A stretch of 63,292 nt of DNA, the filler included, from Octopus bimaculoides (Eukaryota), in NCBI RefSeq assembly GCF_001194135.2. It is 7 parts of 5 records of this genome, joined end to end, with 100 filler letters (N's around TTAATTAATTAA, not from the genome) between each part and the next. Parts side by side here need not be neighbours in the genome. Positions count along the whole stretch, not along the records: positions 13,436 to 29,137 come from NC_069008.1; 6 more parts are not named here. One strand, given 5' to 3'. Shown here in pieces: positions 17,251 to 25,250 of the stretch. Each line of letters begins with the position of its first letter. The stretch's first letter is position 1. The position numbers and the translations under genes were made by a program. A model generated the notes under the pieces. That model was not told the origin of the DNA, searched no databases, and worked only from the letters and a program-made list of their open reading frames with translations.

Positions 17251-19352
17251 ATGCCTAGAGATAGAGGAAAACCATCACATGACTTTAATATCTATGGAAA
17301 GTCTATCTCCCAGAATGGTAACCGACTTAGACATAAGCGTATTCATACAGGGAAGAAACAATATTGCTGTGATATCTGTGGGAAATCATTCTCTGTACAT
17401 TGTCACTTAACATCCCACCAACGTGTACATACAGGAGAGAAGCCATATGGATGTGATATCTGTGGCAAATCATTCTCTCAGAATGGACACCTAACTAAAC
17501 ACAAACGTACTCATACAGGAGAGAAACCATATGATTGTGATATCTGTGGTAAATCATTCTCTCAGAATGGAAGCCTAACCACACACAAACGTATTCATAC
17601 AGGTGAAACAGCAAATTACTGTGATATCTGTGGTAAATCATTCTCTCAGTTTCATTACTTAACTTCTCACAAGCGTATTCATACTGGAGAAAAGCCATAT
17701 TGCTGTGATACTTGTGGTAAATCATATTCTATACGTAGTAGCTTAATAGCTCACCAGCATATACACACTGGAGAGAAACCATATCACTGTGGTATTTGTG
17801 GTAAATCATTCTCTAATTGTAGTGCTTTGAATTCTCACAAGCGAATTCATACAGGAGAGAAGCCATTTTGCTGTGATATCTGTGGTAAATCATTCTCTCA
17901 GACTTCTGCTCTAACTACACACAAGCGTATTCATACAGGAGAGAAGCCATATCATTGTGGTATTTGTGGTAAATCTTTCACACAAAATGCTTTCTTAATT
18001 TCTCACAAACGGATTCATACAGGTGAGAAGCCATATCAGTGTGATATCTGTGGCAAATCATTCTCTGCCAGTGGTGTGTTAACATCTCACCAACGTATAC
18101 ATACAGGAGAGAAGACATATCACTGTGGTATTTGTGGTAAATCATTCTCTGGAAGTAGTGCTTTCAATTCTCACAAGCGAATTCATACAGGAGAGAAGCC
18201 GTATTGCTGTAATATATGTGGTAAATCATTCTCTCAAAGTAATGACTTAACGAAACACAAGCGAATACATACAGGAGAGAAGCCATATCACTGTAATATC
18301 TGTGGTAAATCATTTATTGGAAGTAGTCACTTAAGGATACACAAGCGTATTCATACAGGTGAGAAACCATATAAGTGTGGCATTTGTGGTAAATCTTTCA
18401 CCCGAAATACTACCTTAACTTCTCACAAACTGATTCATACAGGAGAGAAGCCATATCAGTGTGATATCTGTAGAAAATCATTCTCTCGATTTGAATGCAT
18501 CACTGCACACAAGCGTTTACATACAGGGGAAAAGCCATATCACTGTAATATCTGTGGTAAAGCATTCACTGTAAGTTGTAGTTTACGAACACACAAACGT
18601 ATTCATACAGGAGAGAAACCTTATCGCTGTGATATCTGTGGTAAATCATTCTGTGGCAGTAATGCCTTAAAAGTACATAGATATATTCATACAGGAAAGA
18701 AGCCATATAACTGTGATATCTGTGGCAAATCATTCTGTCAAAATGATGCCTTAAAAGTACATAAGCGTATTCACACAGGAGAGAAGCCATACAGTTGTGA
18801 TATCTGTGGTAAATCATTTCCTCAAAATATTCACTTAACTCGGCACAAACGTAGTCATACAGGAGAGAAGCCATATCGCTGTAATATCTGTGGTAAATCA
18901 TTTTCTGGAAGTAGTGCATTAAGTACACACAAACATATTCATACAGGAGAGAAGCCATACCACTGTGATATCTGCAATAAATCTTTCTCTCGGAATGACA
19001 ATTTGACTACTCACAAACGTATTCATACAGGAGAAAAGCCATTTCAATGTGATATTTGTAAGAAGTCATTCTCTGACAGTAGTAGTTTAATAATACACAA
19101 GCGTATTCATACAGGAGCGAAGCCATTTGAATGTGATATTTGTGAAAAGTCATTCTCTCAAAGTAGTAATTTAATGACACACAAGCGTAGTCACACGGGT
19201 GAGAAGCCATATCAGTGTGATATCTGCAGTAAATCATTCTCTGTAAGTTCTGGTTTAACAGTGCATAAACGTATTCATACAGGAGAGAAACCTTATCACT
19301 GCAATATCTGCAGTAAATCATTCTCTGTAAATTCTAGCTTAAAATCACATAA
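17251..19352 (+). CDS. Tandem C2H2 zinc-finger protein (ZNF-A): degenerate N-terminal finger, 23 complete fingers and a 24th running into the gap; 3' end hidden in N gap 19353-19880
   Basis: Open frame from ATG 17251 with 28-aa repeats CxxCGKSFxxxxxLxxHxRxHTGEKPY; no stops before the gap; the sequence after the gap is not finger-like. Confidence 0.95.
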
Positions 19353-20299
19353 NNNNNNNNNNNNNNNNNNNNNNNNNNNNNNNNNNNNNNNNNNNNNNNN
19401 NNNNNNNNNNNNNNNNNNNNNNNNNNNNNNNNNNNNNNNNNNNNNNNNNNNNNNNNNNNNNNNNNNNNNNNNNNNNNNNNNNNNNNNNNNNNNNNNNNNN
19501 NNNNNNNNNNNNNNNNNNNNNNNNNNNNNNNNNNNNNNNNNNNNNNNNNNNNNNNNNNNNNNNNNNNNNNNNNNNNNNNNNNNNNNNNNNNNNNNNNNNN
19601 NNNNNNNNNNNNNNNNNNNNNNNNNNNNNNNNNNNNNNNNNNNNNNNNNNNNNNNNNNNNNNNNNNNNNNNNNNNNNNNNNNNNNNNNNNNNNNNNNNNN
19701 NNNNNNNNNNNNNNNNNNNNNNNNNNNNNNNNNNNNNNNNNNNNNNNNNNNNNNNNNNNNNNNNNNNNNNNNNNNNNNNNNNNNNNNNNNNNNNNNNNNN
19801 NNNNNNNNNNNNNNNNNNNNNNNNNNNNNNNNNNNNNNNNNNNNNNNNNNNNNNNNNNNNNNNNNNNNNNNNNNNNNNNNAAGCCACTCATCATTGGCTC
19901 TCTTTCTGAAGTAGTCTTTCACAGCTGTTTGAACTTTTAATGATGCCAACCTTTTTTATTTACTTGAAGGGATATGGTTTAGTGTCAAATTTCTTTCTTC
20001 CTCTGAAAATTTAAAAACAAACACCCTCTTCTATAATTAAATGTATTTACATTGGAGAGGAGATATAACAGTAATAACAGCCTTCCCACACTGTTTTATA
20101 TTAACACAACTGAACACTGTTGAGATAACTTCCCTCTGTGATAGTTTTAATAAAAGCAATTTCCTCCAGATTTTGAATTTGTTTCCTGTGTTTAAAACCA
20201 ACATTGTTATATTTGGGAAGAATCAATTGGTGAAGCCTATAAACACACCGGTTATTGTTTGCCAATTCTTTTCATGTTTCAGTCGTTTGTCTGTGAACA

Positions 20300-20608
20300 T
20301 GCTGGAACACCAACTTTGGGGATTTTAGTCGAACAAATCGACCCCAGGACTTATTCTTTGTAAGCCCAGTAATTATTTTATCAGGCTAATTTGCTGAACC
20401 ACTAAGTTATGGAGACATAAGCACTATCAGTTGTCAGGCGATGGTGGTGGGGTCAAACAGATGCAAACACACGAATACATACACACACACATATATGATG
20501 GGCTTACAAAAATGAAGTCTTGGGATCGATTTCTTCAACTAAAAGCCCTTCAAACTGGTGCTCCAGTATGGCTGCAGTCAAATGACTGAAACAGGCAAAA
20601 GAATAACC
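20300..20608. mobile_element. Inverted pair of SINE family C fragments (20300-20500 minus, 20509-20608 plus)
   Basis: GTCGAACAAATCGACCCCAGGACTTATTCTTTGTAAGCC faces GGCTTACAAAAATGAAGTCTTGGGATCGATTTCTTCAAC. Confidence 0.75.
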
Positions 20609-23260: not shown

Positions 23261-23450
23261 AGAAAATGATTTACCACAGATATCACAGTGATAAGTTTTC
23301 TCTCCTGTCTGAATACGTTTGTGTGTTTGTAAGCTAAAACTTACAGTGAATGCTTTACCACAGATATTGCACTGATATGGTCTCTCTCCTGTATGTAAAT
23401 GCTTGTGTGCAGTTAAGCATTCAATTCAAGAGAATGATTTACTACTGATA
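23261..23450 (-). pseudogene. Decayed C-terminal fingers of ZNF-B (orthologous to ZNF-A fingers 14-16)
   Basis: The shifted frame reads [64 protein letters not shown], then is cut by an RTE 3' end at 23260. Confidence 0.9.
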
Positions 23451-25250
23451 TCACAGATATGGCTTCTCACGTGTATGAATCCGTTTGTGAGAAGTTAAGG
23501 ATGTATTTCTGGTGAAAGATTTACCACAAATGTCACACTGATATGGTTTCTCACCTGTATGAATACGGTGGTGTATCCTTAAGTGACTACTTCCAGTAAA
23601 TGATTTACCACAGATATTACAGTGATATGGCTTCTCTCCTGTATGTATTCGCTTGTGTTTCGTTAAGTCATTACTTTGAGAGAATGATTTACCACAGATA
23701 TTACAGCAATACGGCTTCTCTCCTGTATGAATTCGCTTGTGAGAATTCAAAGCACTACTTTCAGAGAATGATTTACCACAAATACCACAGTGATATGGCT
23801 TCTCTCCTGTATGTATACGTTGGTGAGATGTTAATGCACCACCGGCAGAGAATGATTTGCCACAGATATTACAGTAATATGGCTTCTCACCTGTATGAAT
23901 CCGTTTGTGAGAAGTTAAGAAAGTATTTTGTGTGAAAGATTTACCACAAATACCACAATGATATGGCTTCTCTCCTGTATGAATACGCTTGTGTGTAGTT
24001 AGAGCAGAAGTCTGAGAGAATGATTTATTACAGATATCACAATGATATGGTTTCTCTCCCGTATGAATTCGCTTGTGAGAATTCAAAGCACTACAATTAG
24101 AGAATGATTTACCACAAATACCACAGTGATATGGTTTCTCTCCAGTGTGTATATGCTGGTGAGCTATTAAGCTACTACGTATAGAATATGATTTACCACA
24201 AGTATCACAGCAATATGGCTTTTCTCCAGTATGAATACGCTTGTGAGAAGTTAAGTAATGAAACTGAGAGAATGATTTATCACAAATATCACAGTGATAT
24301 GGTGTTTCTCCTGTATGAATACGTTTGTGTGTAGTTAGAGCAGAAGTCTGAGAGAATGATTTACCACAGATATCACAGTGATATGGCTTCTCTCCTGTAT
24401 GAATTCGCTTGTGAGAATTCAAAGCACTACAATTAAAGAATGATTTACCACAAACATCACAGTGATATGGCTTCTCTCCTGTATGTATACGTTGGTGAGC
24501 TATTAAGCTACTACGTATAGAATATGATTTACCACAAGTATCACAGCAATATGGCTTTTCTCCAGTATGAATACGCTTGTGAGAAGTTAAGTAATGAAAC
24601 TGAGAGAATGATTTACCACAAATATCACAGTGATATGGCTTCTCTCCCGTATGAATACGTTTGTGTGTGGTTAAGCTTCCATTCTGAGAGAATGATTTAC
24701 CACAAATATCACATTGATATGGCTTCTCTCCTGTATGAACACGTTCGTGAGATGTTAATTTACTATGTACAGAGAATGATTTACCACAGATATCACACTG
24801 ATATGGCTTCTCTCCTGTATGAATATGCTTGTGAAAATATAAAGCACTCCCTCCAAAGAAAGACTTACCACAAACATCACAGTGATATGGCTTCTCTCCT
24901 GTATGAATACGTTTGTGTGTAGTTAACTGATCACTTTCACAGAATGATTTACCACAGATATCACAATGATATGGTTTCTCTCCTGTATGAGTACGTTTGT
25001 GTTTAGTTAGGTGTCCATTCTGAGAGAATGATTTGCCACAGATATCACATCCATATGGCTTCTCTCCTGTATGTACACGTTGGTGGGATGTTAAGTGACA
25101 ATGTACAGAGAATGATTTCCCACAGATATCACAACAATATTGTTTCTTCCCTGTATGAATATGCTTATGTTTAAATCGGTTACCATTCTGGGAGAATGAC
25201 TTTTCACAGATATTAAAGTCACATGATTGTTTTCCTGTATCTTTAGGCAT
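23451..25250 (-). CDS. Tandem C2H2 zinc-finger protein (ZNF-B), 599 aa, degenerate N-terminal finger plus 20 fingers; paralog of ZNF-A, ended by a frameshift-derived stop
   Basis: Open frame with HTGEKPY linkers; fingers match ZNF-A finger by finger (e.g. [35 protein letters not shown]). It could also be a young pseudogene. Confidence 0.9.

Follow-up and report, generated by a model that had tools for sequence, protein, structure and literature searches.

Whole-finger block differences between two inverted C2H2 zinc-finger genes of Octopus bimaculoides

Zinc-finger genes at the locus

We analysed a 15.7-kb piece of the genome of Octopus bimaculoides (NC_069008.1, positions 13,436 to 29,137 of a joined window of 63,292 nucleotides, in whose numbering all positions are given). 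The piece contains two poly-zinc-finger genes in convergent orientation, ZNF-A on the plus strand and ZNF-B on the minus strand. Their open reading frames (ORFs) are homologous, and the upstream flanks are collinear in inverted order, with 16674-17074 matching 25288-25697 and 15053-15514 matching 27277-27806; this marks the pair as an inverted, tail-to-tail segmental duplication that includes at least 2.2 kb of 5ʹ flank and fingers 0 to 16. A preliminary description of this DNA, made from the sequence alone, had also proposed an inverted (convergent) paralog pair. The two arrays differ by whole fingers: in comparison to the finger order of ZNF-A, ZNF-B contains insertions of three and of four fingers and has lost the fingers from 14 onward.

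Both genes belong to the Krueppel-type poly-C2H2 class. The repeated C-X2-4-C-X12-H-X3-H unit was found in 23 full fingers of ZNF-A and in 20 of ZNF-B, with all ligands intact in the full fingers of both, and Pfam families PF00096 and PF13465 matched the ZNF ORFs with E-values from 1e-103 to 1e-210. From one finger start to the next there are always exactly 28 residues, and the linkers have the seven residues of the TGEKPY/F-x type; TGEKPYx is present in nearly all cases, and the variants, including TGAKPFE, are equally long. KRAB (PF01352) had no Pfam match in the ORFs of ZNF-A, ZNF-B or a third gene, ZNF-C, although a KRAB domain in an unseen upstream exon is possible. For ZNF-A and ZNF-B, Pfam found C2H2 families only, and SCAN, BTB and SET domains were not detected in these ORFs, in agreement with the earlier statement that KRAB is missing.

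The third gene, ZNF-C, is located beyond the piece on the plus strand, ~13 kb downstream of ZNF-A (window-equivalent 33163-34182), and its ORF of 339 amino acids contains 11 fingers. Homology was found between its 5ʹ flank and those of ZNF-A and ZNF-B, and between its 3ʹ flank and the sequence to the right of the assembly gap in ZNF-A. The ZNF-C array ends like that of ZNF-B, at a stop codon within a linker, behind which one more finger has decayed. In the pair, the first 39 codons (17251-17367, plus strand; 25134-25250, minus strand), which we call finger 0, represent a former finger that is intact in ZNF-C, has the form CX4C in ZNF-B and has lost both Cys residues in ZNF-A. The 599-residue ZNF-B protein was located on CM046628.1 of GCA_001194135.2 (Octopus bimaculoides) at ~12.50-12.52 Mb, which confirms the coleoid source, and neighbouring paralogs are present on the same record, as in the octopus C2H2 expansion clusters. 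The chromosome assembly is an older shotgun assembly re-scaffolded with Hi-C (PMC9068888), and the piece contains three runs of N. The positions of the features are collected in Table 1.

Correspondence of the fingers

The arrays were compared in units of 84 nt, each consisting of a finger and the linker that follows it. Corresponding units of ZNF-A and ZNF-B were 88-100% identical and non-corresponding ones 62-89%, save for pairs of the A6/A10 type (87-94%). Fingers B1 and B2 correspond to A1 and A2 (100% and 99% identity), B6 to A3 (88%), and B15-B20 to A8-A13 (91-99%), while the block A4-A7 has two counterparts in ZNF-B: B7 and B11 for A4 (99% and 98%), B8 and B12 for A5 (94% and 100%), B9 and B13 for A6 (93% each) and B10 and B14 for A7 (94% and 98%). 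The finger proteins of B6 and A3 are identical, and their ten nucleotide differences comprise seven in the 21-nt linker and three silent ones in the finger. Tandem Repeats Finder reported a 336-nt (four-finger) super-period in ZNF-B only.

Fingers B3, B4 and B5 had no counterpart in ZNF-A, their best matches being 86%, 81% and 89% identical, respectively. B5 resembles A1 and is related to finger 1, from which it has diverged (89%). For B3 and B4 no plausible donor finger was found in ZNF-A, ZNF-B or ZNF-C, the best candidates (about 81-87%) being within the background. The 5ʹ end of B4 (CDVCGKSFF) is common to B9, part of which looks to have been converted from B4.

A neighbour-joining tree of all 84-nt units together with the ZNF-C fingers (200 bootstraps) grouped A4/B7/B11 and A5/B8/B12 in 199/200 replicates each and A7/B10/B14 in 136/200; the support for the listed groups was mostly 90-100%, and A3 with B6 was weak (85/200, 42%). 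The preliminary description had arrived at the same scheme from the recognition helices (B1-2 as A1-2, B6 as A3, B7-10 and B11-14 as two copies of A4-7, B15-20 as A8-13, and B3-B5, with best nucleotide matches here of 81-89%, having no equivalent in ZNF-A). Its helix strings, its correspondences and its view that the differences are whole-finger blocks in 84-bp register agree with the nucleotide identities, the constant spacing of the fingers and the per-finger tree that it had suggested as a check.

Duplications within the arrays were also observed in both genes: A6 (17788-17871) is 92% identical to A10 (18124-18207) and A8 (17956-18039) is 89% identical to A13 (18376-18459), and the same resemblances occur among the ZNF-B counterparts. 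Block duplication was thus already under way before ZNF-A and ZNF-B split.

The four-finger duplication and its junction

Finger B10 stands at the junction of the two copies of the four-finger block. At unit positions 32-45 it is of the finger-7 type at 8/8 sites that are informative for A7/B14 versus A3/B6, and from unit position 54 it is of the finger-3 type, with the Lys codon AAA instead of AAG and a terminal C. The linker that follows, GAA ACA CCA TAT CAC (TGETPYH), shares the unusual GAAACA with the linker of A3, GAA ACA GCA AAT TAC (TGETANY). We infer that the chimeric B10 is the trace that would be expected from an unequal exchange, in register, in which finger 7 recombined with finger 3 within their homologous 3ʹ halves (both ...LTTHKRIH). 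Unequal crossover or conversion in register had been suggested before, and a chimeric B10 is of the kind that exchange produces.

The exchange between fingers 7 and 3 also accounts for the linker that had been singled out as odd: TGET is explained as the ancestral linker before finger 4, kept in ZNF-A and before the second copy in ZNF-B. This linker had been described as one residue longer than usual, which we have to correct: TGETANY has seven residues, the same as TGEKPYx, and differs from it by substitutions. An origin of TGETANY from a compensated frameshift was ruled out, as only point substitutions separate it from TGETPYH and TGEKPYH.

The two copies in ZNF-B differ at 19/336 nt and lie more than 1 kb from any gap. 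For these reasons we considered the four-finger duplication real, subject to confirmation with long reads, the true artefacts in the piece being duplicates that are 100% identical and flank the other two gaps.

Truncation of ZNF-B

The ZNF-B frame ends in the linker after finger 20, where a deletion changes TATCAGTGT to TATC--TGT and gives ...TREKPYL-stop. Similarity to ZNF-A extends 190 nt past the stop codon and includes two fossil fingers: B21p, equivalent to A14 (86%), with an internal stop and a Cys to Ser change, and B22p, equivalent to A15 (92%), with a His to Gln change. The homology then breaks off abruptly at ~23262, inside the finger-16 equivalent. Exactly at this break starts a GC-rich element of ~0.5 kb (~53% GC versus a background of ~33%) with open frames on both strands, for which no Rfam or Pfam match was obtained (22760-23259); it may mark the breakpoint of the duplication or a truncating insertion. 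The deletion and premature stop, the fossil fingers and the end of homology against this element had escaped the preliminary description, as had the incomplete state of ZNF-A and the presence of ZNF-C. In B1-B20, 80/80 zinc ligands are intact, in comparison to 2/8 lost in the fossil fingers, and ZNF-B probably still encodes a DNA-binding protein of 20-21 fingers.

Table 1. Features of the ZNF-A/ZNF-B locus in window positions
Feature	Position	Strand	Description
Distal upstream block of the inverted duplication	15053..15514	+	74-88% identical to 27277-27806, its collinear counterpart beside ZNF-B
ZNF-A upstream flank	16674..17250	+	Homologous to the ZNF-B flank 25251-25697 (85% identity) and to the ZNF-C upstream flank
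ZNF-A ORF	17251..19352	+	700 amino acids; degenerate finger 0, 23 complete fingers, then finger 24 up to its residue 17; no stop seen
A3-A4 linker TGETANY	17599..17619	+	Seven residues; GAAACA (E-T) codons common to the B10 linker
ZNF-A fingers 4-7	17620..17955	+	Single-copy counterpart of the duplicated block of ZNF-B
Assembly gap	19353..19880	.	528 N, estimated length; would cover the last ZNF-A fingers and the stop codon
Non-coding sequence, probable ZNF-A 3ʹ flank	19881..20200	+	Homologous to the ZNF-C 3ʹ flank
GC-rich (~53%) repeat-like element	22760..23259	.	Adjoins the truncated 3ʹ end of ZNF-B; partial copy at 25899-26051
Fossil fingers B21p and B22p and ~25 nt of the finger-16 equivalent	23262..23455	-	Homology to ZNF-A stops there
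2-bp deletion in comparison to ZNF-A	23455..23456	-	Linker after B20; frameshift leading to the TGA stop at 23451-23453
ZNF-B ORF	25250..23451	-	599 amino acids; CX4C finger 0 and 20 canonical C2H2 fingers; C-terminus TREKPYL, then stop
Fingers B11-B14	23958..24293	-	Second copy, closer to A4-A7 (98, 100, 93, 98%)
Finger B10	24294..24377	-	Chimeric junction unit: positions 32-45 finger-7 type, 54-84 finger-3 type including the TGETPYH linker
Fingers B7-B10	24294..24629	-	First copy of the four-finger (336-bp) tandem duplication
Fingers B3-B5 (ESDQLTT, GGSALYF, VHSKLTS)	24714..24965	-	252-bp, three-finger block absent from ZNF-A
ZNF-B upstream flank	25251..25697	-	Missing the ~130 nt directly 5ʹ of the ATG that ZNF-A and ZNF-C keep

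Divergence and selection

The 13 corresponding intact fingers of ZNF-A and ZNF-B differ at 44/1090 positions (4.0%). In comparison, the divergence was 14.6% in the proximal upstream flank (62/424; Fisher p = 1e-11 versus the intact fingers), 11.1% in the N-terminal former finger (13/117; p = 0.002), where the ratio of nonsynonymous to synonymous substitution rates (dN/dS) was ~1.3, and 11.3% in the fossil fingers behind the stop codon (19/168; p = 4e-4). The preliminary description had spoken of a recent duplicate, which does not hold: with flanks 14.6% and the N-terminus and fossil fingers 11% diverged, the duplication is older. Within the arrays the differences are clustered: their counts per finger are over-dispersed (p = 0.0016), and identity is uninterrupted over 165 nt in fingers 1-2 and over 219 nt between fingers 4-6 and B11-13. 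In permutation tests the longer run had p = 1e-4 when all aligned sequence was included and p = 0.0018 when only the ORF fingers were. At synonymous sites the fingers diverge by 0.069, about half of the divergence of the flank. The low and clustered divergence of the fingers, as opposed to that of the flanks, thus indicates conversion and/or purifying selection acting on an older duplication, and as a whole the pattern suggests that gene conversion acted in patches between the two inverted arms, along with a degree of purifying selection.

On the path between ZNF-A and ZNF-B dN/dS was 0.50, and its value below 1 was supported by a binomial test (p = 0.028). The comparison of helix and framework that had been proposed earlier gave no signal of helix-directed positive selection, the values being 0.50 for helix positions -1 to 6 and 0.49 for the framework; positive selection on the contact residues was not supported either, dN/dS being 0.37 at positions -1, 2, 3 and 6. 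In addition, the helices are identical between the duplicated fingers of ZNF-B. Since helix and framework evolve alike and the duplicated helices are unchanged, any re-programming would have taken place through the number and order of the fingers only, and the rapid re-programming of DNA binding proposed in the preliminary description appears overstated. The long binding site of ZNF-B would accordingly differ mainly by finger number and register, and not by new contact residues. Because of the intact ligands, the dN/dS below 1 and the contrast in divergence across the stop codon, ZNF-B looks constrained rather than dead, on what is modest evidence.

Model of array remodelling and alternative explanations

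We consider it probable that these observations reflect an inverted duplication which was remodelled in exact 84-bp units by exchange between misaligned fingers, in a cluster of KRAB-less poly-C2H2 genes. According to this model, the duplication took in 2.2 kb or more 5ʹ of the start codon and reached as far as the middle of finger 16, and ZNF-B was born truncated at its 3ʹ end or became so later. Homologous exchange between misaligned fingers would then remodel the arrays in units of 84 bp. One unequal exchange, between the 3ʹ halves of fingers 7 and 3, would have duplicated fingers 4-7 in ZNF-B and given the order 3-4-5-6-[7/3]-4-5-6-7-8, and the three-finger block B3-B5, which does distinguish the two genes, would either have disappeared from ZNF-A or have been acquired by ZNF-B, with the lack of a plausible donor for B3 and B4 mildly favouring loss from ZNF-A. 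Short conversion tracts between ZNF-A and ZNF-B and within ZNF-B may keep some fingers 98-100% identical while the other fingers and the flanks drift. Finally, the 2-bp deletion after finger 20 ended the ZNF-B frame, and the fingers beyond it are decaying.

Several observations weigh against this model. A5 and A7 clustered with B12 and B14 (neighbour-joining bootstrap 98% and 92%), which B8 and B10 did not. At fingers 5 and 7 the second copy, B11-B14, is nearer to A4-A7 than to the first copy, B7-B10; a simple, recent duplication in ZNF-B only does not fit, and the grouping requires either later conversion between ZNF-A and ZNF-B or an older duplication that was lost from ZNF-A. The low divergence of the intact fingers could be explained by purifying selection alone, and identity to ZNF-A declines as a gradient towards the 3ʹ end (B19 95%, B20 91%, B21p 86%) and does not drop abruptly where the stop codon lies. 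An exact match to the ZNF-B protein came from the genome record only, and the sole source of data is one short-read-based assembly of one individual of one species, with three gaps in 15.7 kb. Moreover, the protein searches yielded no outgroup that would polarise the block changes. With the whole ZNF-A protein as query, the matches were long vertebrate zinc-finger proteins of at most 61% identity, and ZNF-A itself was not returned, so that this search was unsuited to orthologs; an exhaustive phmmer search of ZNF-A against 1.84 billion representatives gave a best identity of 58% and hence no close relative. The N-terminus with finger 1 as query yielded no candidate, and B3-B5 matched short proteins of at most 75% identity, which equals the background identity of the framework; many of them came from Octopus species, and Octopus proteins dominate the best matches to this block. 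In an exact cluster look-up, neither ZNF-B nor ZNF-C was present in the collection.

We also regard it as possible, without favouring it, that the changes took place in ZNF-A, the ancestor having had the arrangement of ZNF-B and ZNF-A having lost three and four fingers by in-register deletions. B3 and B4, for which the best potential donors are 81-87% identical, look old rather than newly copied, and the closeness of A5 and A7 to B12 and B14 is what would be seen if the duplication predated the last exchange between the two genes; gene conversion, however, explains the similarity of A4-7 to B11-14 equally well, two independent and precise deletions would be needed, and B7 and B11 were marginally each other's closest relatives (116/200). 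It is very unlikely, in our opinion, that a short-read assembler mis-threaded the 84-bp array, the real ZNF-B having fewer fingers or being a collapsed mixture of paralogs. The shotgun origin of the assembly would permit such an error, two of the three gaps in the piece are flanked by duplicated ends of 100% identity, and the perfect runs shared by ZNF-A and ZNF-B exceed the length of short reads. However, copies duplicated by an assembler would be identical, unlike the two copies in ZNF-B, and would lack a specific 7/3 chimeric junction with a linker that matches the unusual TGET of A3; the distance of the duplication from the gaps and the preservation of the reading frame and of all zinc ligands throughout also argue against an artefact. 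Finger counts from the O. bimaculoides assembly nevertheless need to be confirmed with long reads.

Another explanation, which we find unlikely, is that ZNF-B is a dying pseudogene and that the block differences are neutral noise of slippage or unequal exchange, without any re-programming. The gene is truncated at its 3ʹ end and frameshifted, with decaying fingers behind the stop and a repeat adjoining that end, it has lost ~130 nt 5ʹ of the ATG that are kept in ZNF-A and ZNF-C, and its protein was present on no transcript-derived contig; at only ~4% divergence, moreover, an intact ORF is no strong sign of constraint. On the other hand, divergence from ZNF-A is 2.8-fold lower in the 20 fingers that precede the stop than in those behind it (p = 4e-4), all 80 ligands persist at a dN/dS of 0.5, and finger 0 of ZNF-B keeps both Cys residues that finger 0 of ZNF-A has lost. 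A stop codon followed by fossil fingers is, in addition, known from the expressed human ZNF252 (PMC2865497), and ZNF-C ends in the same way.

Comparison with other zinc-finger arrays

The vertebrate KRAB-ZNF genes resemble the octopus pair in being clustered, locally duplicated C2H2 arrays with TGEKP linkers, whose paralogs and orthologs differ mainly by gain or loss of whole fingers in register (PMC3126818). In primates, the duplication and deletion of fingers within arrays has been called 'a common path for divergence' and is the most frequent species-specific change in these genes (Nowick et al. 2011, PMC3126818). Degenerate fingers after a premature stop, as found here, are likewise exemplified by human ZNF252, in which fingers are stranded behind a stop codon (PMC2865497). 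In contrast, the octopus ORFs have no detectable KRAB, SCAN or BTB domain, the host is a mollusc, and the contact residues carry no signal of positive selection. The KRAB-ZNF family is further characterised by binding to transposable elements and repressing them, and a link of the octopus pair to a target transposon would be conjectural.

Massive clustered expansions of C2H2 genes are well established in coleoids (Albertin et al. 2022, PMC9068888; Holzinger et al. 2025, PMC12513265), and the genes described here, from the same superfamily and organism, are part of this clustered and lineage-specific pattern, with three members within 17 kb; expression in the nervous system or in embryos is a further trait of the octopus expansion clusters. 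Whereas the published studies are concerned with the duplication of whole genes, their phylogeny and their expression, the change at this locus lies within the array; unequal exchange, gene conversion and finger number are not mentioned by Holzinger et al. 2025 (PMC12513265). Cephalopods have thousands of C2H2 genes, which have been studied by counts, trees and expression, and in the literature that we searched the diversification of their binding specificity was not described.

The minisatellite of PRDM9 is another array in 84-bp register in which the number and order of fingers are changed by unequal exchange and conversion. PRDM9 encodes a PR/SET domain, and its neighbouring fingers are nearly identical save for the contact codons. 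Adjacent fingers of the octopus genes, on the contrary, are ~65-85% identical (about 75%), helix and framework evolve alike, and SET was not found in the ORFs; the locus thus shows neither the near-identical adjacent repeats nor the PR/SET domain of a PRDM9-like gene.

The locus is a well-resolved example of a known mode of change, in a lineage in which this mode was not described in the searched literature. The mapped exchange junction indicates that duplication and loss of finger blocks, together with signs of patchy conversion, act in the octopus as in vertebrate KRAB-ZNF clusters, which speaks for array remodelling as a general feature of zinc-finger DNA with an 84-bp period that is not tied to KRAB biology. 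We would suggest, tentatively, that a KRAB-less cephalopod expansion, independent in origin of the vertebrate KRAB zinc-finger proteins, uses the same two layers, namely unequal in-register exchange, by which the number and order of the fingers change, and conversion between nearby inverted paralogs, by which certain fingers are homogenised, and that ZNF-B is a functional, recently remodelled factor with 20-21 fingers. If true, this would provide a concrete and testable case of convergent array shuffling in a large-brained invertebrate.

The assembly gap and the end of ZNF-A

The reading frame of ZNF-A runs into the assembly gap in the middle of finger 24, and the end of the array and its stop codon would lie, unread, inside the gap. 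To the right of the gap no finger sequence was found, and none of the frames stays open beyond 38 codons. Two segments, 19881-19952 and 20145-20193, match the 3ʹ flank of ZNF-C with 80-90% identity; their counterparts lie 181 nt and ~375 nt downstream of the ZNF-C stop codon. As their order and orientation are preserved, the array on the left and the 3ʹ flank on the right of the gap plausibly, and on present sequence probably, belong to one gene, ZNF-A. From the spacing in ZNF-C, at most ~4 further fingers would fit in the gap. An in-frame ORF of 887 amino acids that passes through the 528 N was dismissed as meaningless; the gap amounts to exactly 176 codons, which carries no meaning because the gap length is an estimate.

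A public gene call of 989 amino acids extends over ~17 kb from the ATG of ZNF-A (17251) to the stop codon of ZNF-C, crossing the gap and placing ZNF-B, on the opposite strand, inside an 'intron'. This model is probably an artefactual fusion of ZNF-A and ZNF-C.

Flanking sequence and repeats

The segment of ~130 nt directly 5ʹ of the ATG occupies 17075-17205 in ZNF-A and window-equivalent 33056-33190 in ZNF-C, in comparison to only 25277-25290 in ZNF-B. With ZNF-C as the outgroup, the difference is a deletion in the putative 5ʹ untranslated region or promoter of ZNF-B. In front of the ATG, ZNF-A and ZNF-B contain a possible splice donor (AAAGTGAGT) and a possible acceptor (TTCTTGAAG); both were dropped as candidates, since neither is conserved in ZNF-C.

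The two gaps other than that in ZNF-A are accompanied by duplicates of 100% identity at or across them: 15793-15882 equals 16120-16209 (90 nt), and 28164-28295 equals 28588-28719 (132 nt). These duplicates look like unmerged contig ends or assembler duplications and not biology.

Rfam gave zero matches over the whole piece, and Pfam gave zero matches for the flanking ORFs. The latter include an ORF fragment on the minus strand (16437-16664, ...RRLRWYGHVARMDED...GRGRPRKTWDEVVRHD), cut by the gap at 16210-16436, which we take to resemble the C-terminal tail of ORF2 proteins of retrotransposons without long terminal repeats (a LINE-like reverse-transcriptase tail). A repeat of ~130-230 nt, probably a short interspersed element, is present in several direct and inverted copies at 15553-16209 and 28033-28733, distally upstream of both arms and beside the gaps. 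The repeats and the LINE-like fragment around the genes fit the earlier characterisation of the locus as transposon-rich, and the two arms have received different insertions, both of repeats and of the LINE-like tail.

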